A program made the translations under genes and the position numbers. Of a stretch of DNA of 64,000 bases, positions 42,761-60,502 are shown one piece after another. This DNA comes from Anaeramoeba ignava BMAN (taxonomy: Eukaryota; Protista; Anaeramoebae): NCBI GenBank assembly GCA_028826165.1, contig JAPDFW010000084.1, positions 1 to 64,000 of the forward strand, in the 5' to 3' direction. Under the pieces are notes generated by a model. It was not told where the DNA came from and ran no database searches. It saw nothing but the letters and a program-made list of their open reading frames with translations. Numbering within the stretch: position 1 is the stretch's first letter; each line of letters begins with the position of its first letter.

Positions 42761-44652
42761 TTAAAAATAAACTTCAAGTTTATTAACTTTCCATTCTCCA
42801 TAATCTCGTGTAAAAAACATCTTTGATTCTTTTGAATCAAATTCAATATTATTTGGAAGTTGATAAGTATGTCCTGGATTTGAATATCCTGTTTTCAAAT
42901 CAGCTGAAATTGCTAAATCCCAACCATCTCCAAAAATAGGTCCTCTTTGTGAATAATAAACAATTGCCTTCTTGCTTTCTTTCTCTTTTAATTCAATTTT
43001 AAGTTGCTGATCCTTTTGGGTTGCTTTCAAAAGGAATAAAAAAGCTTTATCATCTTCAATATAACTAATATCTTCAAAATATTTATCATCAATATCATTA
43101 TCAATATCAATATCATTATAAAAATCACTTGATTTTTGTTTTTCTGGTTTTTTCCATCCAGCTGAGCTATATCCTCCAAATATATTCCCTTCAGATTCAA
43201 TGATAATAAGAATTGGTGCTTTATTATCACAAATTTGATGGAAATGTTGACAAGTTAATTTATCCTCTTTTTTTGAAACAAATTGAAGTTTCATTTTTTT
43301 GAAAATATCTTCTCCAATCCAATTTTGTAAATGATTTGCAAATTTTTCAATCGGTCCTTCTCTTTTTTCAACATTTTTTGGATGAATCCTTTTGGAAATT
43401 TCCTCATTTTCAAATGGAATTATTGTATTTGAATTGGAATAAACTCTTTTACTTTTAAACCAATGAACCTCTTTCTCTTTTGTGTATTTTTCAATAATTT
43501 TTTGATTTTCTTCATAATTTCCATCATTTATATTCTCAATAAAATCTGAAATATCAATTATCTCATCAGGTGTCAATAAATCTAAATGAATAACCTCAGA
43601 AAATTCATCAAGATTCAATGCTCCAAATCTAACAAATTTAATAAAATCTGTTTTTAACAAAGTATGTGTTCTTTGATCTATAATTGTTATCATTCCTTTT
43701 TTTGAATTTTGGTTTTGAATTCGATTTTGATTTTGATTTTGATTTTGATTTTCATTTTCCATTGTTTGGATTGCATAATCAATAACCATTTGTAAAATTT
43801 GTAATTCACTTGAAATATTCAAAGTATCCCGATAAAGAATCATTTTAAGATTTAAATCTGAAATATTTAAGTAATCTCTGTGTTGAATAATATCTTCCAT
43901 TTGCTTATCAATAATAGAAAAAACTTTTTCAAGAAGAACTGGTTCTCCAAGTGTATTAACACTTTCTAATTGGCACACAATCGCATTTTTGATTATGATT
44001 AATTGCGGATTGCTGTCATTTTCTTTGATGCCAGAATTCTCATCTTGCAGAATATTTTGAGGGGAAGTGATAATTGTGGAAAATGATTGAGTTTTATACT
44101 GTGTCATAGTTTCATTATGAATGTGGACTCTTTCAATTTCAGAAAGAAGGAATTTTTTACAATAAAATTCGAGTTGATGAAGAGCATATTCTTTAGCAAA
44201 AGAAAGTAAATCACAAGTTAAATCAAATGGTGTTTTTTCTACTTGATTTGGATCGACAACAGGAATATTGCATTTTGAAGTGTAAATGTATTCCAAAGCT
44301 GTTTTAACTACTTCATAATTATATTCTAATTGTAAATGGCCTCTTGGAATATTTCTTATTAATGCTGGTGAACGAGTTGATAATATCGATGAATATACAT
44401 ATAATTTCTGATTATTTGCTTCAATTATCAAATCTTGTCCAAGTCTAGATTTTTGAAGTGAAAAACGAAGATTTTCAATAAGATCTTCTGTTTTTGTTAA
44501 TTTCTTGGTTGTTGAAAATTTGTTTGATTTTTTTTCCGAAATTTCATTTTCACTAAATTTTGTTTTGTTTTGGAAGATGAATGAATAGAAAATGTTTTAT
44601 ATATTATTTAATTTTATTATAATTTTTTTTTCCCAAACCTTTTTAAACTCAT
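42761..44652 (-). CDS. BTB-BACK-TLDc protein, paralogue 8 (micro-exon MSLKS 44639-44652; exon 2 from 44552)
   Basis: Intact 556 aa ORF extended in frame by the spliced micro-exon. Confidence 0.88.
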
Positions 44653-44756: not shown

Positions 44757-46532
44757 ATGAATGAAATTATATTTTTTGGTTCAAATAAAGAACCAAAACT
44801 TATCAAAAATGAACCAGATAAAATAAAAGATCCAACTCAATTTAAATTTGAAAATGAAAATGAAAATGAAAATGAAAATGAAAAACAAATTAAACAAATT
44901 TCAACAGGAAATTTTGGAACAATTTTCCTTTTTAAAAATGGAAAAGCAATAGAATATTTAAAAGATTCAAATCAAAATCCTTCAAAAATCCAAATTGAAG
45001 AAAATATTCAAAAAGTAACTGTTGGTCATGGAAATGAAGCTATTTTAACAAAAGAAGGAAATGTATTTGCTAAAGGAGAATATGTTAATCCAAAAAATCC
45101 AAATGAATTTATCAATATTTCATCATTAATTGAAGATCCAAATGATAGAATAATTCAAGATATTGCTTCTGGAGCTCGTGCAGTTTATTTATTAACTTCA
45201 AATCAAAATGCTTATGGAATTGGTTTAAATGATAATGGCCAACTTGGTTTTGATACTGAAGCACTTAAAGAAACAGAAAAACCAATTTTAATGATGAAAA
45301 ATATTTCTAAAATATTTTCAGGAAATTCTTCACTTTCTGTTTTTCTTTTAAATTCAAATCAAGAATTATTTGGATGCGGATATAATCAAAATGGTCAACT
45401 TGGATTAGGAGAATCAAGAATAAAAGATTCCAAAATCCAAAAATTAACCAAAATCCAAAATATTCCAAAAGGTAAAATAATTGATATTCAATCTGGATAT
45501 GTTCATTCAATAATGTTAATTGAAAATGAAGATGAAAATGAAAATCCAAAAAGAAAAATTTATTCATGTGGATTTGATATATTTAATGGGCTTCTCAGAC
45601 ATGGAAGTACTTATGAATTTACTGAAATTAAATCATTATTTGCAAATGATGATCATATTATTGATATTTCTGTTGGAGCTGGACATACTTTGATTTTAAC
45701 AACTAATAATTACGTGATAGGATTTGGGAATAATTATTATGGTCAATTAGGAACTGGAAATGAAGGAATACAAAAAATTCCAGAACCAGCTAGAATTCCT
45801 GAATTAAGATTTAATGAAGATATTTCTAATTATCATATTTCTTGTGGTGTATCGAATTCATTTCTTTATTATTCTCCTTCTTTTTCAAATCTTGAAGAAG
45901 ATTTGATAAAACTATTTAGAAGAAAAGAATTTTGCAATATTTCATTTAAAACAGAAAATGGAGAAATAATTGAAGCTCATAGATTAATATTGAAATATAG
46001 ATTAAATCAAAATCAAAATCAAATTGAAAAACTTAAAGAAATTATTTCAAAAAAATCAATTAAAGAATCAAATCAAATATTTGAAATGATTTATTCAAAC
46101 AATTCCAAAATAAATCCAAAATTATATTCTGAAATTAAAGAAATTATAAATTCTAATGAAAAAATAGAAGAAACAATGAAAAGAATTTATTTAAATGAAA
46201 ATGAAAAAGATTTTATAATTGAAAGAAAAGAAAAACAATATAAATTTCCAAAATTAATATTAATAATGAGAAGTGAATTATATCGAGGAATGTTTTTATC
46301 TGTTACAGAAGATAAATCTAATAAAGTTACAGATTATAGTGAATTAAGTAATAAATCATTTCAAATATTTGAATATTGGATTTATTCAAATCAAATTAAA
46401 GATGAAATTCAAATTACAAAAGGAATAATTGATGAAGTTAAAAAAGGAATTGATTATTTTCAATTAAATCAAACAAATCCAAATTTAATTGATTTATTAA
46501 TTAACAAATTCAATAACCAAAATCAAAATTAA
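44757..46532 (+). CDS. RCC1-repeat + tandem BTB protein, copy 1 (intact)
   Basis: RCC1 motifs GLNDNGQLG, GYNQNGQLGLG, ISVGAGHTL and GNNYYGQLGTG. BTB motifs FCNISFK...IEAHRLIL and DFII...KLILIMRSELYRGMF. Confidence 0.9.
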   Translation: MNEIIFFGSNKEPKLIKNEPDKIKDPTQFKFENENENENENEKQIKQISTGNFGTIFLFKNGKAIEYLKDSNQNPSKIQIEENIQKVTVGHGNEAILTKEGNVFAKGEYVNPKNPNEFINISSLIEDPNDRIIQDIASGARAVYLLTSNQNAYGIGLNDNGQLGFDTEALKETEKPILMMKNISKIFSGNSSLSVFLLNSNQELFGCGYNQNGQLGLGESRIKDSKIQKLTKIQNIPKGKIIDIQSGYVHSIMLIENEDENENPKRKIYSCGFDIFNGLLRHGSTYEFTEIKSLFANDDHIIDISVGAGHTLILTTNNYVIGFGNNYYGQLGTGNEGIQKIPEPARIPELRFNEDISNYHISCGVSNSFLYYSPSFSNLEEDLIKLFRRKEFCNISFKTENGEIIEAHRLILKYRLNQNQNQIEKLKEIISKKSIKESNQIFEMIYSNNSKINPKLYSEIKEIINSNEKIEETMKRIYLNENEKDFIIERKEKQYKFPKLILIMRSELYRGMFLSVTEDKSNKVTDYSELSNKSFQIFEYWIYSNQIKDEIQITKGIIDEVKKGIDYFQLNQTNPNLIDLLINKFNNQNQN

Positions 46533-47050
46533 AATCAAAATTAAAATTAAAATCAAAAATTAAAATTAAAATTAAAATCAAAATTAAAATTAAAATTAAA
46601 ATCAAAATTAAAATCAAAATTTAAAATTAAAATTTAAAAAATTAAAATTAAAAATCAAAATCAAAAAATTAAAATCAAAATTAAAAATTTTAAAATTAAA
46701 ATTAAAATTAAAATTAAAATTAAAATTAAAATTAAAATTAAAATTAAAATTAAAATTAAAATTAAAATCAAAATTAAAAAATTTTAAAATTAAAATTAAA
46801 ATTAAAATTAAAATTAAAATTAAAATTAAAATTAAAATTAAAATTAAAATTAAAATTCAAAATTAAAATTAAAATTAAAATCAAAATTAAAATTAAAATT
46901 AAAATCAAAATTAAAATTAAAATTAAAATTAAAATTAAAATTAAAATTCATTTATAAAATTAAAATTAAAATTAAAATTAAAATCAAAAATCAAAATTAA
47001 AATTAAAATTAAAATCAAAATTAAAATTAAAATTAAATTCAATTTAAAAA
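46533..47050. repeat. (AAAATT)n microsatellite spacer; similar tracts at 48878-49380, 51273-51890, 56576-57010 and, reversed, at 16800-16975, 24690-25200, 25590-25800 and 33226-33785
   Basis: Directly visible. Confidence 0.95.
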
Positions 47051-47111
47051 TTAAATTCATTTTTTCATTTTTTATTTTTTTTTCATTTTTTTACTTTTTT
47101 AAAAAAAGAAA

Positions 47112-48877
47112 ATGAATGAAATTATATTTTTTGGTTCAAATCAATATCCAAAACTTATAAAAAATGAACCAGATAAAATAATAAAACCAATTCAATTTAA
47201 ATTTGAAAATGAAAATGAAAATGAAAAATCAAATTAAACAAATTTCAACAAGTTTTTTTTCAACAATTTTCCTTTTTGAAAATGGAAAAGCAATAGAATA
47301 TTTAAATGAAAATTATTCAAAACAAAATCCTTCAAAAATCCAAATTGAAAATATTCAAAAAGTAGCTGCTGGTTCTTTTAATGAAGCTATTTTAACAAAA
47401 GAAGGAAATGTATTTGCAAAAGGAGAATATATTAATTCAAAAAATCCAAATGAATTTATCAATATTTCATCATTAATTAAAGATCTAAATGATAGAATAA
47501 TTCAAGATATTGTTTCTGGAGATAGTTCAATTTACTTATTAACTTCAAATCAAAATGTTTATGGAATTGGTTTGAATTATTATAGTCAACTTGGTTTTGA
47601 TTCTGAAGCACTTAAAGAAACAGAAAAACCAATTTTAATGATGAAAAATGTTTCTAAAATATTTTCAGGAAATTCTTCTTATTCTGCTTTTCTTTTAAAT
47701 TCAAATCAAGAATTATTTGGATGCGGATATAATCAAGATGGTCAACTTGGATTAGGAGAATCAAAAAAAGAAGAAACAAAAATCCAAAAATTAACCAAAA
47801 TAAAAAATATTCCAAAAGGCAAAATAATTGATATTCAATGCGGATTTACTCATTCAATAATGTTGATCGAAAATCAAAATCAAAATCAAAATCCAAAAAG
47901 AAAACTTTATTCATGTGGAGAGTCCGAATATAATGGACTTGGCAAAAATGATGAAAATACTTATGAATTTACTGAAATCAAATCATCTTTATTTGAAAAT
48001 GATGATAATATTCTTGATTTTTCTTGTGGAGCTGGACAAACTTTGATTTTAACATCTAATTCGAAATTGATAGGATTTGGAGGTAATTTATTTGGTCAAT
48101 TAGGAAATGGAAATAAAAATACTCACTTAATTCCAATTCAAATTAAACTTCCTAAATTAAGATTTAATGAAAATATTTCTAATTATCATATTTCTTGTGG
48201 GTTTAACAAATCATTTCTTTATTATTCTCCTCCTTCTTTTTCCAATCTTGAAGAAGATTTGATAAAATTATTTGAAAGAAAAGAATTTTGCAATATTTCA
48301 TTTAAAACCAAAAATGGAGGAAATAATTGAAGCTCATAAATTAATATTGAATTATAGATTAAATCAAAATCAAATTGAAAAACTTCAAGAAATTATTTCA
48401 AATAAATTAATTAAAGAATCAAATCAAATATTTGAAATGATTTATTCAAACAATTCCAAAATAAATCCAAAATTATATTCTGAAATTAAAGAAATTATAA
48501 ATTTAAATGAAAAAATAGAAGAAACAATGAAAAGAATTTATTTAAATGAAAATGAAAAAGATTTTATAATTGAAAGAAAAGAAAAAAAATATAAATTTCC
48601 AAAATTAATATTAATAATGAGAAGTGAATTATATCGAGGAATGTTTTTATCTGTTACAGAAGATAAATCTAATAAAGTTACAGATTATAGTGAATTAAGT
48701 AATAAATCATTTCAAATATTTGAATATTGGATTTATTCAAATCAAATTAAAGATGAAATTCAAATTACAAAAGAAATTATTGATGAAATTAAAAGAGGAA
48801 TTGATTATTTTCAATTAAATCAAACAAATCCAAATTTATTTGATTTATTAATTAAAAAATTTAATAATCAAAATTAA
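47112..48877 (+). CDS. RCC1-repeat + BTB protein, copy 2 (frameshifts at ~47225 and ~48320; sequencing error or pseudogene)
   Basis: ATG at 47112 (MNEIIFFGSNQYPK), colinear with copy 1 and split over ORFs 47203..48330 and 48272..48877. Confidence 0.8.
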
Positions 48878-49527
48878 AATTTAAATCAAAATTAAAATTA
48901 AAATCAAAAATTAAATTTAAAATTTAAAATTAAAATTAAAATTCAAAATTAAAATTTAAAATTAAAATTAAAATTAAAATTAAAATTAAAATAAAAAATT
49001 AAAATTAAAATTAAAATTAAAATTAAAATTAAAATTAAAATCAAAATTAAAATTAAAATTAAAATTAAAATTAAAATTAAAATTAAAATTAAAATTAAAA
49101 TTAAAATTAAAATTAAAATTAAAATTTAAAATTAAAATTAAAATTAAAATTAAAATTAAAATTAAAATTAAAATTAAAATTAAAATTAAAATTAAAATTA
49201 AAATTAAAATTAAAATTAAAATTAAAATTAAAATCAAAATTAAAATTAAAATTAAAATTAAAATTAAAATTAAAATCAAAATTAAAATTTTAAAATTAAA
49301 ATTAAAATTAAAATTAAAATTAAAATTAAAATTAAAATTAAAATCAAAATCAAAATTAAAATTAAAATTAAAATTAAAATCTAATTTTATTATAATTTTT
49401 TTTTCCCAAACCTTTTTAAACTCATTAAAAGAAAAAAAAACAAAAAGGAGAAAAAAAAAATGAAAAAAAAAAAGGAGAAAAAAATAAAAATTTTTTTTTC
49501 ATTTTTTTACTTTTTTAAAAAAAGAAA

Positions 49528-51272
49528 ATGAATGAAATTATATTTTTTGGTTCAAATAAAGAACCAAAACTTATCAAAAAATGAACCAGATAAAATAAAA
49601 GATCCAACTCAATTTAAATTTGAAAATGAAAATGAAAAATCAAATTAAACAAATTTCAACAGGAAATTTTGGAACAATTTTCCTTTTTAAAAATGGAAAA
49701 GCAATAGAATATTTAAAAGATTCAAATCAAAATCCTTCAAAAATCCAAATTGAAAATATTCAAAAAGTAACTATTGGTTCTTTTAATGAAGCTATTTTAA
49801 CAAAAGAAGGAAATGTATTTGCAAAAGGGAAGAAATATTAATTCAAAAAATCCAAATGAATTTATCAATATTTCATCATTAATTGAAGATCCAAATGATA
49901 GAATAATTCAAGATATTGTTTCTGGAGCTCGTGCAGTTTATTTATTAACTTCAAATCAAAATGCTTATGGAATTGGTTTAAATGATAATGGCCAACTTGG
50001 TTTTGATACTGAAACACTTGGAAAAACAGAAAAACCAATTTTAATGATGAAAAATATTTCTAAAATATTTTCAGGAATTGCTTCACTTTCTGTTTTTCTT
50101 TTAAATTCAAATCAAGAATTATTTGGATGCGGAGATAATCAACTTGGTCAACTTGGATTAGGAGAATCAAGAATAAAAGAAAAAGCAATCCAAAAAATTA
50201 ACCAAAATCCAAAATATTCCAAAAGGTAAAATAATTGATATTCAATGTGGAGGTTCTTATTCAATAATGTTGATTGAAAATGAAAACGAAAATGAAAATC
50301 TAAAAAGAAAACTTTATTCATGTGGATATGATAGATATAATGGGCTTCTCAGACATGGAAATACTTATGAATTTACTGAAATTGAATCATTATTTGCAAA
50401 TGATGATCATATTCTTGATTTTTCTTGTGGAGCTGGGCATACTTTGATTTTAACAACTAATAATTACGTGATAGGATTTGGATATAATGGGAGTGGTCAA
50501 TTAGGAGATGGAATTGAAGAAATACAAAAAATTCCAATTCTAGCTAGAATTCCTGAATTAAGATTTAATGAAGATATTTCTAATTATCATCTTTCTTGTG
50601 GATTTCAAAAATCATTTCTTTATTATTCTCCTTCTTTTTCAAATCTTGAAGAAGATTTGATAAAACTATTTAGAAGAAAAGAATTTTGCAATATTTCATT
50701 TAAAACCAAAAATGGAGAAATAATTGAAGCTCATAAATTAATATTGAAATATAGATTAAAAGATGAAAATCAAATTGAAAAACTTCAAGAAATTATTTCA
50801 AAAATCAATTAAAGAATCAAATCAAATATTTGAAATGATTTATTCAAATAGAATAATAAATCCAAAATTATATTATGAAATTAAAGAAATTATAAATTCC
50901 AATGAACAAATTGAAGAAACAATGAAAAGAATTTATTTAAATGAAAATGAAAATGATTTTATAATTGAAAGAAAAGAAAAACAATATAAATTTCCCAAAT
51001 TAATATTAATAATGAGAAGTGAATTATATCGAGGAATGTTTTTATCTGTTACAGAAGATAAATCTAATAAAGTTACAGATTATAGTGAATTAAGTAATAA
51101 ATCATTTCAAATATTTGAATATTGGATTTATTCAAATCAAATTAAAGAAGGAATTCAAATTACAAAAGGAATTATTGATGAAATTAAAAAAGGAATTGAT
51201 TATTTTCAATTAAATCAAACAAATCCAAATTTATTTGATTTATTAATTAACAAATTTAATAATCAAAATTAA
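49528..51272 (+). pseudogene. RCC1-repeat + BTB, copy 3, about 5 frameshifts (pseudogene or poorly polished gene)
   Basis: Colinear with copy 1. Single-base indels, mostly in A-runs, at ~49580, ~49640, ~49830, ~50197 and ~50805. Confidence 0.65.
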
Positions 51273-51930
51273 AATTAAAATCAAAATTAAAATTAAAATT
51301 GAAATCAAAATTAAAATTAAAATTAAAATTAAAATTAAAATTAAAATTAAAATTCAAATTTAAAATTAAAATTAAAATTAAAATCAAAATTAAAATTAAA
51401 ATTAAAATTAAAATTAAAATCAAAATTAAAATTAAAATTAAAATTAAAATTAAAATTAAAATTAAAATTAAAATTAAAATTAAAATTAAAATTAAAATTA
51501 AAATTAAAATTAAAATTCAAAATTAAAATTCAAAATTAAAATTAAAAATTAAAATTAAAATTAAAATCAAAATTAAAATCAAAATTAAAAATCAAAATTA
51601 AAATTAAAATTAAAATTAAAATCAAAATTAAAATTAAAATTAAAATTAAAATTAAAATTAAAATTAAAATTAAAATTAAAATTAAAATTAAAATTAAAAT
51701 TAAAATTAAAATTAAAATTAAAATTAAAATTAAATTTAAAATTAAAATCAAAATTAAAATTAAAATTAAAATTAAAATTAAAATTAAAATTAAAATTAAA
51801 ATTAAAATTAAAATCAAAATTAAAATTAAAATTAAAATTCAAATTAAAATTCAAATTAAAATTAAAATTAAAATTAAAATTAAAATTCAAAATTTTTTTT
51901 CATTTTTTTCCGTTTTCTTTCTTTTTTATT

Positions 51931-53031
51931 ATGTCTCTTTCTGATAAGTTAAAAAAAGTTCAACTAAAAAAAACAACACATCAACAACAAGAACCAAAGA
52001 AACCAGAAATAATTTCATTAAAAACCGAAGAAGATAATTTCGAACTAATCCAAAATTACACACATAGAGTTTTTTTAACAAATATTGAATATTGGATCAA
52101 CATTCTGGAGAAAACAACATTTAAAACAATTCTCATTCCAATGAATCAAAAAGAAACTGAATTTCTCATTCAATCTTACGAACATTTGAAGAAATCCAAT
52201 TTCGAAAAATTTGAACTAACAAACGAACTTCAAATACAATTTGATGAAATTTCAAACAAATTGGAAAAGGCAATGCTTGAAATGACAAACGGAGATCCTA
52301 CAAAGCCTGTTTTTATCAAAAGTAGTTGCAGAAGTCCTAAAGATTCTGTTGTTTATGAAAAAGAATTTCTTGATTTATACAAATCTTTTTTGGAAAAACA
52401 ATTCGATCAAAGTATAAATTCCAAAATTTGGGCACTAACAAAAGCTGGGATGAAAATGCTTCAATTCACAGATGCAAGGAAAGTGGTTCAAACATTGTGT
52501 TCATCTTCAAGGATCTACAATGATATGAATATCTATTTGAAATATTTATCACCAAATTCAGAAAATCCAAAAACGAATCAAGAAAATCAACCAAATTTTA
52601 AGCATAAAGAACATTTTGTAGTTCGCGAATGGATAGATATGGAGCCTGAAATGGAGTTTCGAGGATTTGTGACAAACTACAACTTGAATGCTTTATCTCA
52701 ATATCATTATTTTGTTTATTTTCCAAATCTTGTTGAGAAAAAGAAGGAAATTCAGGACAAGATTGTGGATTTCTACAAAAAAGAGGTTCAACCTTTATTA
52801 CAAAATCATTTCCAATCTAAAGACTATATTGTCGATTTCTGTGTTTCTCATGGAAAAGTTTGGGTTATTGAATTGAATGCTTTTGAGGAATCAACTGATG
52901 CTGGTTTATTTGATTGGGAAAAAGAAATTAATATTCTTTCAAATGGTCCTTTTGAATTTAGGATTCAAACAGAACCTCCTGTTGGAATTGAAAAAAGACT
53001 TTCTGAAGAATGGCAAAAATATATCAATTAA
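51931..53031 (+). CDS. Cdc123/D123-like (R2K clade) ATP-grasp protein with a WH2-like N-terminal peptide
   Basis: VFIKSSCRSPKDS, LCSSSRIYND, FVVREWIDMEPEMEFRGFV, ALSQY, YIVDF, VWVIELNAF, TDAGLFDW and PFEFRI are Cdc123-family motifs. Intronless. Confidence 0.85.
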   Translation: MSLSDKLKKVQLKKTTHQQQEPKKPEIISLKTEEDNFELIQNYTHRVFLTNIEYWINILEKTTFKTILIPMNQKETEFLIQSYEHLKKSNFEKFELTNELQIQFDEISNKLEKAMLEMTNGDPTKPVFIKSSCRSPKDSVVYEKEFLDLYKSFLEKQFDQSINSKIWALTKAGMKMLQFTDARKVVQTLCSSSRIYNDMNIYLKYLSPNSENPKTNQENQPNFKHKEHFVVREWIDMEPEMEFRGFVTNYNLNALSQYHYFVYFPNLVEKKKEIQDKIVDFYKKEVQPLLQNHFQSKDYIVDFCVSHGKVWVIELNAFEESTDAGLFDWEKEINILSNGPFEFRIQTEPPVGIEKRLSEEWQKYIN

Positions 53032-57093: not shown

Positions 57094-60000
57094 ATGGAAA
57101 CAATTTCTTTTCTTTATGCATGTGGAATGAATCAAAATGGACAACTTACATTAGAAGACAAAAGCAATATTAAGTATCCTGAAAAAGTGACAAAATTTGA
57201 AGGAAAAAAAGTAATAAGAATTGCAGCAGGTTATCAAAATGCACTATTTTTGTTATCTGACAATGAAATAGAACAATTTGGACTAATAACAACAACTCAC
57301 ACTCAATTTTTTTCAGATAAATCACCAATTAAAGATATTAAATCTGGTCAAGACCATTTCATTGCTTTAACTGAAAATGGAGAAGTTTATCATTGGAAAG
57401 CTGTTAATTCTCAATCTTATTTCTCTGATTCTTTAATTACTACAAATCCTACTTTGATAGTTTTTGATAAACCTGCTCAAGAGATAATTGGTGGTGGTCA
57501 TTCTACTTATTTTTTGACTGAGTATCAATTTCCAAAATAAATATTAATTAAATATTCAAAATAAATATTAATTAAATATTCAAAATATTCAAAATATTCA
57601 AAATATTCAAAATATTCAAAATATTCAAAATATTCAATATATTCAATATAAATATTCAAAATATTCAATATAAATATATTCAATATAAATATTCAATATA
57701 AATATATTCAATATATTCAATAAAAATATTCAAAATATAAATATTCAAAATATTCAAAATATTCAATAAAAATATTCAAAATATTCAATATAAATATTCA
57801 AAATATAAATATTCAATATAAATATTCAAAATATATTCAATATAAATATATAAATATTCAATATATAAAAAAAAATATTCAAAATATAAATATTCAATAT
57901 ATTCAAAATATTCAAAAATATTCAATAAAAATATTCAAAATATTCAAAATAAATATTCAAAATATAAATATTCAATAAAAATATTCAATATATTCAAATA
58001 TAAATATTCAAAATATTCAATATAAATATTCAAAAATATTCAAAATAAATAAAATAAATATTCAAAATAAAGATTCAATAAAAATATTCAATATAAATAT
58101 TCAATAAAAATATTCAATATAAATATTCAAAAATATTCAAAATAAAGATTCAATAAAAATATTCAAATATAAATATTCAAAATATTCAATATAAATATTC
58201 AAAATATTCAAAATATTCAAAATATTCAAAATAAATAAAATAAATATTCAATATAAATATTTAAAATATTCAAAATAAATAAAATAAATATTCAAAAATA
58301 AAGATTCAATAAAATATTCATATAAATATTCAATAAAAATATTCAATAAAAATATTCAATAAAAATATTCAAATAAAGATTCAATAAAAATATTCAAAAT
58401 AAAATATTCAATATATATATTCAAAATATTCAAAATATTCAAAATATTCAATAAAAATATTCAAAATATTCAATAAAAATAAAATAAATATTCAATAAAA
58501 TATTCAATATAAATATTCAAAATATTTAATATAAATATTCAAAATATTTAATATAAATATTCAAAATATAAATATTCAAAATATAAATATTCAAAATATA
58601 AATAAAATAAATAAAATAAATATTCAAAATATTCAAAATATTCAAATATTCAATATAAATATTCAAAATATTCAATATAAATATTCAATATAAATATTCA
58701 ATATAAATATTCAAAATATTCAATAAAATATTCAATATAAAATATTCAATAAAAATATTCAATATAAATATTCAAAAATATAAATATTCAAAATATAAAT
58801 AAATATAAATAAATATAAAATTCAAAAATTCAATAAAAATAATATTCAATAAAAATATTCAAAATATTCAAAATATTCAATAAATAAAATATTAAATATA
58901 AATAAATATTCAAATATTCAAAATATATATTCAAAATATTCAAAATATTCAATATATTTAAAATATTCAATAAAAATAAAATAAATATTCAAAATATATA
59001 AATAAATATTCAAAATATTCAAAATATTTAATAAAAATATTCAAAATAAAAATATTCAAAATAAATATTAAAAGAAACGGTGACTTATACGGAGTTGGAT
59101 CAAATTCACAAAATCAAATCTCAAAAAGTTCAGAATCAGTTATAACAAAACCAGAACTTATTGATAATAATGTCGAAAGAGCTTTTTCAGGACCTTATTC
59201 ACACCAAATATTTTTTATAAAAGAAGGAAAATTATATTGTCGAGGATACAACCAATATGGACAATTAGGAACAGGAAACTCAGAAAATAAATCAACAAAT
59301 TATCACCTCAAATTCTTTGACAATCAAGAAATTATTGATGTTTCATGTGGTTATTGTCATACATTAGTCTTGATTCGAGAAGGAGAAGGCCAAAAACTTT
59401 ATACAACAGGATATTTTGATTATAATGGATTAAATAAGCCTAGCAATTCAACAGAATTTTCTCTTCTTTTTAACTACGCTAACCAAGAAATTATTCAAAT
59501 GAGTTCTGGCTCTCAATTTTCTATTATTCTCGTTGAAAATAATAATTTCATTGTTTTTGGATATAATGATTGGGGTCAATTAGGAACAAAAGATACAGCA
59601 AATTATCCTCAACCAAAAAAATTAAGTTTTTCCGAATTTCCAAAAGAAATTGAAATTGAAGTTATTTGTGGATCATATTGCACTTTTTTCCTTCAAGCAA
59701 CTGAAGTAAATTTAAATTGAAAAACCAAAATAAAAAATAAAAAATAAAAAATAAAAAAAGAAAGAAGAAGAAGAAGATGATTTAAACATAATAATTTGAA
59801 TTTAATTAGAAATTCCAATCAATTAGACAAGATATGTTCGAATTTCTCCAGAAAAATGAACTTTGCGATACAACAATTAAATCAATAGATGGACACAATA
59901 TTTCGTTTCATTCACTTATTGTCACTTTAAGAACGAAGAAATTACTTTATGAAATCATCACAATTTTAGAAACAAAAACAAAAGACGAAATCATGTCAAT

Positions 60001-60502
60001 TCTAGTATTTTTATATTCATTAAGAATTATAAATTATAGCGCAATACAAGTTTTCTGCCAAGAAATTGAATATCCTGATTTAATCGGAAAAAATTCATCG
60101 AATCAATATAATGAAGATTTCGCAGATTTATATGAAGAAATGTCAACAAAGGATTTCACAATTATTAGCGGAGAAAAAGAGATTCGCGCTCACAAAATGA
60201 TTTTGGCAGCAAGAAGTGAATTATTTCATGGAATGTTTATGAGTGTAAATGATGATTCGGGAAAAGTTCATGATTATAGAGGAAGCACTCCTGTTTTGCT
60301 TGAAAAATTAATCAAGTTTTTTTACACTGATAAACTTGAAGAACCTATTACTCAAGACATGATCCAAGAACTAACAGAAATGGGTGATTTTTACCAATTG
60401 AATACAAACTCAAAATTTTTCAATGAAGTTTCAAGATTTTCACAAAAAAAAATTATCACTAAAGAAACAAAATCCAAAAAGAAAAGATTCTGGTTCTTTT
60501 AA
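57094..60502 (+). CDS. Divergent RCC1-repeat + tandem BTB protein, 3 exons (57094-57521, 59075-59705, 59810-60502)
   Basis: Splices are in frame (…YFLTE|NGDLYGVGSN…; …QATE|KFQSIRQDMF…). Motifs GMNQNGQL, GYNQYGQLGTG, VSCGYCHTL, GYNDWGQLG and BTB AHKMILAARSELFHGMF. Confidence 0.88.
57540..59070. repeat. Intronic (AAAATATTC)n-type minisatellite, 1.5 kb
   Basis: Fills nearly all of intron 57522-59074. Confidence 0.95.

Follow-up and report, generated by a model that had tools for sequence, protein, structure and literature searches.

How does diversity persist at a few positions of a gene while the rest of it is homogenised between copies, and what could a single cell use such diversity for? The question is raised by the segment 44757–51272 (forward strand) of a 64,000-nt stretch of DNA from the protist Anaeramoeba ignava BMAN (assembly GCA_028826165.1, contig JAPDFW010000084.1, positions 1–64,000 of the forward strand; the whole stretch is called the window). 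The segment contains one gene in three head-to-tail copies, with (AAAATT/AAAATC)n arrays between them, and the product of copy 1 has an RCC1-like propeller followed by a BTB region. A preliminary description, which rightly took the host to be a protist, had proposed that variable propeller loops and a constant BTB region together make up a recognition repertoire of a ubiquitin ligase. From the evidence presented here we consider it probable, if by no means certain, that these genes belong to a germline repertoire of Cullin-3 (Cul3) substrate receptors, in which diversity is selected on one face of the propeller and the scaffold is homogenised by exchange between paralogues.

Hypervariable loops on a conserved propeller

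The preliminary description treated the family as three genes, and in this respect it fell well short. The closest protein matches to copy 1 all come from A. ignava, with more than 100 proteins at 77–82% identity and 807 matches at E <= 0.001. In the host genome (42.8 Mb, 147 contigs), all 74 scored matches are full length and 80–83% identical to copy 1, and a 38-nt pattern from the second BTB domain (at most three mismatches) is present at 1,177 genomic places, with none for the reversed control. Judged from these sequence matches, the family comprises about 1,100 genes and is so far known only from Anaeramoeba ignava; some 1,177 copies of about 1.8 kb would amount to an estimated 5% or so of this protist genome. 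Intact open reading frames (ORFs) are found in 29 of the 30 loci fetched. The codon analyses described below are based on 29 intact paralogues, all from top-scoring loci, and the protein analyses on 124 family proteins. Many family proteins carry the PANTHER name 'BTK-binding protein-related'. The main text of the genome paper mentions neither RCC1 nor BTB, while its supplementary table of lateral-transfer candidates lists related PANTHER names (PMC11550330), and no paper linking Anaeramoeba ignava with BTB was found in the literature searched.

Copy 1 matches the Pfam families PF00415 with 92.4 bits (cut-off 21.7) and PF13540 with 74.2 bits (cut-off 22). AlphaFold2 (AF2) models the propeller with a predicted local distance difference test score (pLDDT) of about 90–97 over residues 45–375, and the matches found by Foldseek with this model include HERC2 RLD2 (7q40; E 2.2e-25, TMt 0.82) and RCC1 (1i2m/1a12). 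Entropy is near zero across most of the protein and exceeds 2.2 bits at 33–35 positions (29 genes, 124 proteins). These positions are held in 13 patches, which comprise, blade by blade, the two residues after the glycine in G-XX-[H/S/N] and the X positions of G-X-N-XX-GQLG; they also include one position just ahead of the next strand. The loop motifs that had been listed earlier for the three copies are all found in their translations, and the differences are indeed concentrated at fixed loop positions, since copies 1, 2 and 3 differ at 3.0–4.8% of nucleotides in the framework, 10–22% in intermediate codons and 32–44% in hypervariable codons. This loop pattern is not a product of chance, because the same codons are hypervariable in the 29 intact paralogues and in the 124 proteins.

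In an antiparallel meander, the loop between strands 1 and 2 and the loop between strands 3 and 4 share the same face, and the patches correspond to these two loops of each blade in the AF2 model. The strand order in this model and the homology to the dimer interface of UVR8, which consists of the Trp triad, R286/R338 and W94 (PMC4501546), support the clustering of the variable residues on one face of the propeller, in line with what the preliminary description had predicted. The composition of the hypervariable sites is distinctive: Tyr accounts for 17.6%, Asn for 13.5%, Asp for 9.6% and Ser for 9.3% of the residues, and Trp, His and Ala are enriched, with Leu, Pro and Met depleted. Ile makes up 1.8% of the residues at these sites but 14.3% of those in the framework, and the neutral expectation from base composition is about 16%. 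A composition so far from the neutral expectation argues that the loops have not been shaped by neutral drift, and by analogy their residue usage resembles that of protein-binding sites.

The rates of change follow the same division of the gene. By the method of Nei and Gojobori (NG86; mean over 406 pairs of the 29 genes), synonymous (dS) and non-synonymous (dN) divergence are 0.086 and 0.022 in the framework (468 codons), 0.147 and 0.288 in the intermediate class (81 codons) and 0.318 and 0.845 in the hypervariable class (35 codons), the hypervariable dN being about 10 times the framework dS. When all sites are included without prior choice, dN/dS amounts to 1.10 over the whole propeller and 0.32 over the whole tail, and the proportion of non-synonymous differences (pN) exceeds three times the synonymous proportion of the framework (pS) at 67 codons, 61 of which are in the propeller. 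Maximum-likelihood fits of the Goldman–Yang model (GY94), made on a fixed FastTree framework topology whose single-tree assumption is violated by recombination, give omega values of 0.10, 0.50 and 1.41 and tree lengths of 1.65, 13.2 and 72.8 for framework, intermediate and hypervariable codons, respectively.

The repertoire that results is very diverse. Among the 124 proteins, each patch occurs in 53–94 distinct variants, the combination of patches is unique to every protein, and two proteins have on average 0.2 patches in common. Identity at one patch is scarcely correlated with identity at another (r about 0.0–0.05, maximum 0.16), and residues inside one patch are nearly independent of each other, which rules out that a limited stock of patches is shuffled as cassettes. 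Terminal branches make up 89% of the length of the framework tree, which is star-like, the frameworks of two copies differ by 3.3 +/- 0.6%, and the tandem neighbours of the window are no closer to each other than copies on different contigs. At 85 informative framework sites, the four-gamete test is failed by 28–39% of pairs at every distance, including distances below 30 nt, and r2 is about 0.04. Copy 3 has 143 informative sites, 98 following copy 1 and 45 following copy 2, and these form 44 runs, fewer than the expected 62.7 (z = -3.6), as in the copy-2-like tract at codons 91–112, which is embedded in copy-1-like sequence. The four-gamete failures and the mosaic structure of copy 3 suggest that short-tract exchange among paralogues is pervasive. 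The sole young duplicate pair in the sample, L010 and L017 on contig C76, is 1.4% apart in the framework and differs in 3 of the 35 hypervariable codons, all of them in patch 7b, through 5 nucleotide changes within 12 nt, the other 12 patches being identical. Several invariant framework residues are changed in this pair, G216E for example.

The BTB-BTB tail and Cullin-3

The BTB region, previously described as constant, is nearly so; it is, however, a tandem BTB-BTB module and not a single BTB domain. Pfam places a BTB domain (PF00651) at residues 483–572 of copy 1 with 37.6 bits (cut-off 20.5), and a sequence search of the tail against solved structures returns weak BTB matches only (E 0.03). 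When the whole protein was modelled by AF2 with an alignment of paralogues only, the tail was poor (pLDDT 26–50); this was resolved by a diverse alignment of the tail, which gave a pLDDT of 95.2 and a predicted TM-score (pTM) of 0.89. The best full-length matches of the predicted fold are the single-chain tethered BTB heterodimers 4u2m and 4u2n, and the next are single BTB domains including BCL6, as well as SPOP and KBTBD2/4 in Cul3 complexes. Because of these fold matches, the tail is best described as a degenerate BTB domain packed on a canonical one, resembling a dimer contained in one chain.

A search of the tail (residues 376–591) against 1.84 billion representatives yields 342 relatives, and the 20 of these that were looked up are all from Anaeramoeba. 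Those of A. ignava combine the tail with other RCC1 subfamilies, ARM-RCC1 fusions or ankyrin repeats, and those of A. flamelloides, at about 31–35% identity, combine it with ankyrin repeats. Proteins with the BTB-BTB tail on ARM-repeat plus RCC1 ('aardvark'), ankyrin or Ras/Roc GTPase-bearing RCC1-BTB arrangements include P0127, P0128, P0132, P0095, P0148 and P0166.

The genome encodes a Cul3 orthologue. The best solved match of locus L033 is Cullin-3 (4e-127, against 2e-107 for Cul4), and the locus is annotated as P0272, 'cullin-3a-related', a protein that is 45–52% identical to Cul3 of many eukaryotes and has a transcriptome source. The other cullin loci were rejected as Cul3, L031, L032, L035 and L036 being Cul4-like and L034 being Cul1/2-like. 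The four Cul4-like loci are on contigs C64, C109, C71 and C74, with L031 and L035 near-identical, and contig C57 carries two tandem cullin copies.

The predicted complex between residues 1–385 of P0272 and the tail scores 0.66, against 0.35 for the best control; of 78 solved complexes 51 attained the score mark for such complexes, as did 2 of the 108 pairs that were mismatched. At least 73% of the contacts are shared between runs, and the pLDDT of the partners is at least 84. On the Cul3 side, the predicted contacts fall at residues 42–55 and 109–121, the two N-terminal stretches that are conserved in the cullin alignment, which we take to be the helices touched by BTB domains in solved structures of Cul3 complexes. 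In the receptor, the predicted contacts fall at residues 507–518, 524–527 and 566–569 (132–143, 149–152 and 191–194 of the tail), and these residues are invariant within the family. In the alignment to KBTBD4, the tail has T-E-D where KBTBD4 has L-K-E. The modelling supports a Cul3-type binding surface on the second BTB domain (BTB2), as had been suggested for the BTB region, and from it we infer that the family would bind Cul3.

Layout of the locus

The three tandem genes described earlier are present as three copies, and copy 1 is the only intact ORF among them (Table 1). In the assembled sequence, copy 2 (ATG at 47112) has two frame-breaking changes, a loss of 11 nt in a GAAAAT run at about 47224 and an insertion of 1 nt at about 48319, the latter splitting the propeller ORF from the ORF of the BTB tail. 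The assembled indels of copy 3 (ATG at 49528) are +1 at about 49576, -17 at about 49635, +1 at about 49827, +1 at about 50192 and -2 at about 50801. As assembled, both copies are pseudogenes.

Table 1. Features of the RCC1-BTB tandem, in positions of the window. Residue numbers are those of copy 1.
Feature	Residues	Position	Strand	Basis and remarks
Copy 1		44757..46532	+	Intact single 591-aa ORF; RCC1 propeller and BTB-BTB; Pfam RCC1, RCC1_2 and BTB above cut-offs
Seven-bladed RCC1-like propeller	1–375	44757..45881	+	AF2, Foldseek, Pfam; N-terminal strands complete blade 7
Patch 7b (G-x-N-xx)	9–12	44781..44792	+	Entropy 2.7–3.0 bits; 89 variants in 124 proteins
Patch 1a	51–54	44907..44918	+	Entropy, variant counts
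Patch 2a (G-XX-N)	91–92	45027..45032	+	Entropy about 3.0–3.2 bits
Patch 2b	108–113	45078..45095	+	Entropy, variant counts
Patch 3a	140–141	45174..45179	+	Entropy 3.2 bits
Patch 3b (x-N-xx-GQLG)	157–161	45225..45239	+	Entropy, variant counts
Patch 4a	190–194	45324..45338	+	Entropy, variant counts
Patch 4b	209–212	45381..45392	+	Entropy, variant counts
Patch 5a	248–249	45498..45503	+	Entropy, variant counts
Patch 5b	273–276	45573..45584	+	Entropy; HMMER alignment to UVR8 W94-G95-D96-F97
Patch 6a	308–309	45678..45683	+	HMMER alignment to W-R of UVR8 GWRHT motifs
Patch 6b	325–328	45729..45740	+	Entropy, variant counts
Patch 7a	365–367	45849..45857	+	Entropy, variant counts
Constant tail	376–591	45882..46529	+	Degenerate BTB then canonical BTB, predicted intramolecular pseudo-dimer; AF2, Foldseek, Pfam
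38-nt stretch with the highest conservation in the family	507–519	46275..46312	+	Helix alpha3 and V-T-E loop; predicted Cul3 contact
Intergenic spacer		46533..47111	.	(AAAATT/AAAATC)n hexamers, followed by the T-rich leader (about 35 nt, conserved) just ahead of the next ATG
Copy 2		47112..48877	+	Frameshifted: propeller ORF 47203–48330 and tail ORF 48272–48877 (alignment to copy 1)
Copy 3		49528..51272	+	Five frameshifts; copy-1-like/copy-2-like mosaic

The C-terminal (N-Q)n of each gene passes directly into an (AAAATC/AAAATT)n array (46519–47050, 48860–49390 and 51260–51900). The stop codon of each gene is a TAA within the hexamer repeat, which may explain why the paralogues range from 590 to 662 aa in length. 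Flanking arrays specific to the family were considered and are unsupported, since the hexamer arrays are spread across the whole window. The T-rich leader TCATTTTTTCATTTTTTTTCTTTTCAAAA, about 35 nt long, abuts the ATG (47075–47111 in the window, about 1465–1500 in L002–L030) and is conserved in 29 paralogues, for which it may serve as a minimal promoter or 5' untranslated region. Homology among the paralogues stops upstream of this leader, and a transposon that carries the gene is therefore unsupported.

Three other genes lie near the tandem. On the reverse strand at 42761–44431, adjoining the tandem, a 556-aa protein is encoded which has a BTB-like start followed by BACK and TLDc domains (Pfam PF07707 and PF07534). 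Directly downstream of the tandem, at 51931–53031 (forward strand), there is a gene of the D123/Cdc123 family (Pfam PF07065). Further on, at 57094–60502 (forward strand), a divergent RCC1...BTB gene with 27–32% identity to copy 1 lies in several ORF pieces, with RCC1 repeats at 57094–57540 and 59370–59720 and the BTB domain at 59834–60502; it may contain introns or be broken.

Alternative explanations and known systems

If the genes are Cul3 substrate receptors, each would give rise to a cytosolic protein made of a seven-bladed RCC1-like propeller and a nearly invariant BTB-BTB tail. The almost invariant framework of the propeller would display about 35 near-saturated residues in two loops per blade on one face, the second BTB domain would present the usual Cul3-binding surface, and each receptor, having its own binding surface, would bring a different target to the one Cul3 to be ubiquitinated. 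Three forces would maintain this arrangement: the binding face would be selected for diversity, the scaffold and the tail would be under purifying selection, and short-tract exchange among paralogues would hold the framework at about 97% identity and bring the variable patches into linkage equilibrium. A ubiquitin-ligase function is what we would infer for such proteins. The family would then rank among the largest germline recognition repertoires of any microbial eukaryote, and it would offer a tractable case both for how single cells recognise many proteins and for how diversity persists while gene conversion homogenises the rest of a gene. A more far-reaching version, which is speculative and which we consider unlikely, holds that the more than 1,000 RCC1-BTB receptors acting on one Cul3 constitute an antibody-like, germline-encoded system of intracellular recognition, that their faces are diversified by dedicated short-tract conversion or loop-targeted mutation, and that they survey viral, transposon or sulfate-reducing-symbiont proteins.

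Several observations weigh against the proposal of a selected receptor repertoire. The diversifying selection that had been claimed earlier is partly borne out by the loop dN and by the dN/dS of the propeller, but the hypervariable omega, set against its own synonymous rate, is not significantly above 1 (2dlnL 2.8, p = 0.09), the test against local dS being weak because the hypervariable codons are saturated; positive selection in the classical sense is found only relative to the framework. Moreover, synonymous diversity at conserved residues climbs toward the hypervariable codons, from about 0.03 beyond a distance of 5 codons to 0.06 at 3, 0.08 at 2 and 0.12 at 1. For Gly codons it is 0.25–0.29 within two codons of hypervariable ones, against 0.01–0.02 at 3–5 codons, and all 10 Gly codons directly before a variable codon are polymorphic, whereas 7 of 14 control Gly codons are monomorphic. 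The rate contrast may be partly mutational, or may arise from homogenisation of the framework. On the side of the tail, no 3-box or BACK domain was seen after the BTB domain by Pfam or AF2, the protein ending about 20 residues past the Pfam BTB match, and the score of the predicted complex may stem from solved BTB-Cul3 structures that the predictor has already learned. The 3-box and BACK elements are auxiliary and are absent from some adaptors such as the KCTDs. As to expression, the sequencing runs on record are of DNA from one sample, plus one run of unknown kind, none being listed as RNA, and a EukProt transcriptome source is found for none of the 120 best family clusters, whereas Cul3 (P0272) has one; some distant RCC1-BTB subfamily members (P0141 and P0160) also have such a source, and the missing ones may reflect weak expression of the members or their collapse by the transcriptome assembler. 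Finally, two of the three copies at the locus are broken as assembled.

These observations have to be set against four other explanations. The raised local synonymous diversity and the clustered differences of the young pair fit old loop patches lying in a framework homogenised by conversion, they fit multi-nucleotide changes hitch-hiking with selected ones, and they fit clustered mutational input. One alternative ascribes the hypervariability of the loops mainly to targeted or clustered mutation (micro-conversion, template switching or error-prone repair), with selection acting only as a filter. The increase of about 4–9 fold in synonymous divergence in the hypervariable codons and the adjoining Gly codons, the result of the omega test against local dS, the confinement of all hypervariable differences between L010 and L017 to one 12-nt patch and the lower kappa of the hypervariable codons (1.7, against 3.1 for framework codons) are in keeping with this explanation. 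It does not account for a residue composition so far from the AT-biased neutral expectation or for ORFs that stay open in 29 of 30 loci; no targeting sequence signal or enzyme was found, the near independence of neighbouring hypervariable residues indicates that whole cassettes are not reused, and at saturation a raised local dS is expected from hitch-hiking or from old patches as well. Mutation as the chief cause appears unlikely to us on these grounds. The broken copies would instead fit a recently amplified and largely dispensable repeat, in which the loops vary through relaxed constraint and many copies are on the way to becoming pseudogenes; the star-like phylogeny with its equal divergence of about 3.3%, the ratio of non-synonymous to synonymous framework variants (2.1 for singletons against 0.9 for shared ones) and the lack of transcriptome-derived identical proteins among the best 120 clusters could be read in the same way. 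A dispensable repeat is nevertheless hard to reconcile with a framework omega of 0.10–0.33, with 29 of 30 sampled loci intact and with the non-neutral composition of the loops, and a loop dN of about 10 times the neutral framework rate is beyond what relaxation can produce, so that we hold this explanation to be improbable.

It is also conceivable that the proteins are not ubiquitin-ligase receptors, and that their variable face binds or regulates the expanded small GTPases of Anaeramoeba in the manner of RCC1, claret or RPGR, the BTB pair serving for assembly only. The variable face does align with functional faces of other RCC1-like domains, one family member (P0095) is fused to a Ras/Roc-type GTPase domain, and membrane-trafficking regulators are greatly expanded according to the genome paper (PMC11550330). 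No GTPase family, however, is nearly as large as the set of over 1,000 unique binding faces; the positions of the catalytic loops are those that vary freely, the Cul3-contact residues of BTB2 are invariant, and the model of the Cul3 complex passes its controls, all of which leave a GTPase partner with a poor chance. An error of assembly or polishing in a repeated gene has to be considered because the genome was assembled from nanopore and Illumina reads (PMC11550330) and because several frameshifts of copies 2 and 3 fall within A-runs or hexamer repeats. Random consensus errors would not give variation that is codon-aligned and confined to fixed structural positions across hundreds of copies with open ORFs; they could account for single frameshifts at most, and an artefact as the origin of the family's variation is very improbable indeed. 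The receptor repertoire with selected loops and an exchanged scaffold is the explanation that we retain.

Several known proteins combine some of the features of this family. RCBTB1/RCBTB2 and IBTK, which are known or proposed Cul3 adaptors, also have an RCC1-like propeller followed by one or more BTB domains. They are conserved, occur in one or few copies and have no hypervariable face, unlike the A. ignava proteins, to which their similarity is at the level of domains only. UVR8 and RCC1 share the propeller fold, and the hypervariable positions of A. ignava align with the W/R of the GWRHT motifs and with W94/D96 of UVR8 (PMC4501546), whereas the A. ignava family lacks a conserved Trp triad or catalytic residues and these positions vary freely. 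An analogy can be drawn with the leucine-rich repeats (LRR) of plant NLRs and with antibodies and VLRs, where a constant repeat scaffold likewise bears surface positions of high entropy, with Tyr, Ser, Asp and Asn abundant at them. The likeness goes no further than analogy, as the A. ignava proteins appear to be intracellular and E3-adaptor-like and are neither NLRs nor secreted receptors. An RCC1 propeller with natural 'CDR' (complementarity-determining region) positions may nonetheless interest protein engineers.

Nematodes and plants have large families of cullin adaptors that evolve adaptively; to our knowledge, none has the design seen in A. ignava. The closest precedent is provided by the MATH-BTB and F-box families of Caenorhabditis and plants, which evolve adaptively according to Thomas (2006, Genome Res 16:1017), as cited in PMC8120010. 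As far as that citation conveys, these too are lineage-specific, tandemly expanding families of cullin-RING substrate adaptors, with purifying selection acting on the domain that binds cullin or Skp1, positive selection acting in the one that binds the substrate and a proposed role against foreign proteins. In A. ignava, by contrast, the variable domain is an RCC1 propeller and the tail is a predicted tandem BTB pseudo-dimer, about 1,100 copies, all approximately 80% identical, are contained in a 43-Mb genome, and the variation is limited to about 35 near-saturated positions, with a framework that exchange appears to keep about 97% identical. What sets the A. ignava family apart from these precedents is the presence of more than 1,000 near-identical scaffolds that differ almost solely at some 35 residues, which resemble a binding site and are placed by the model on one face of the propeller.

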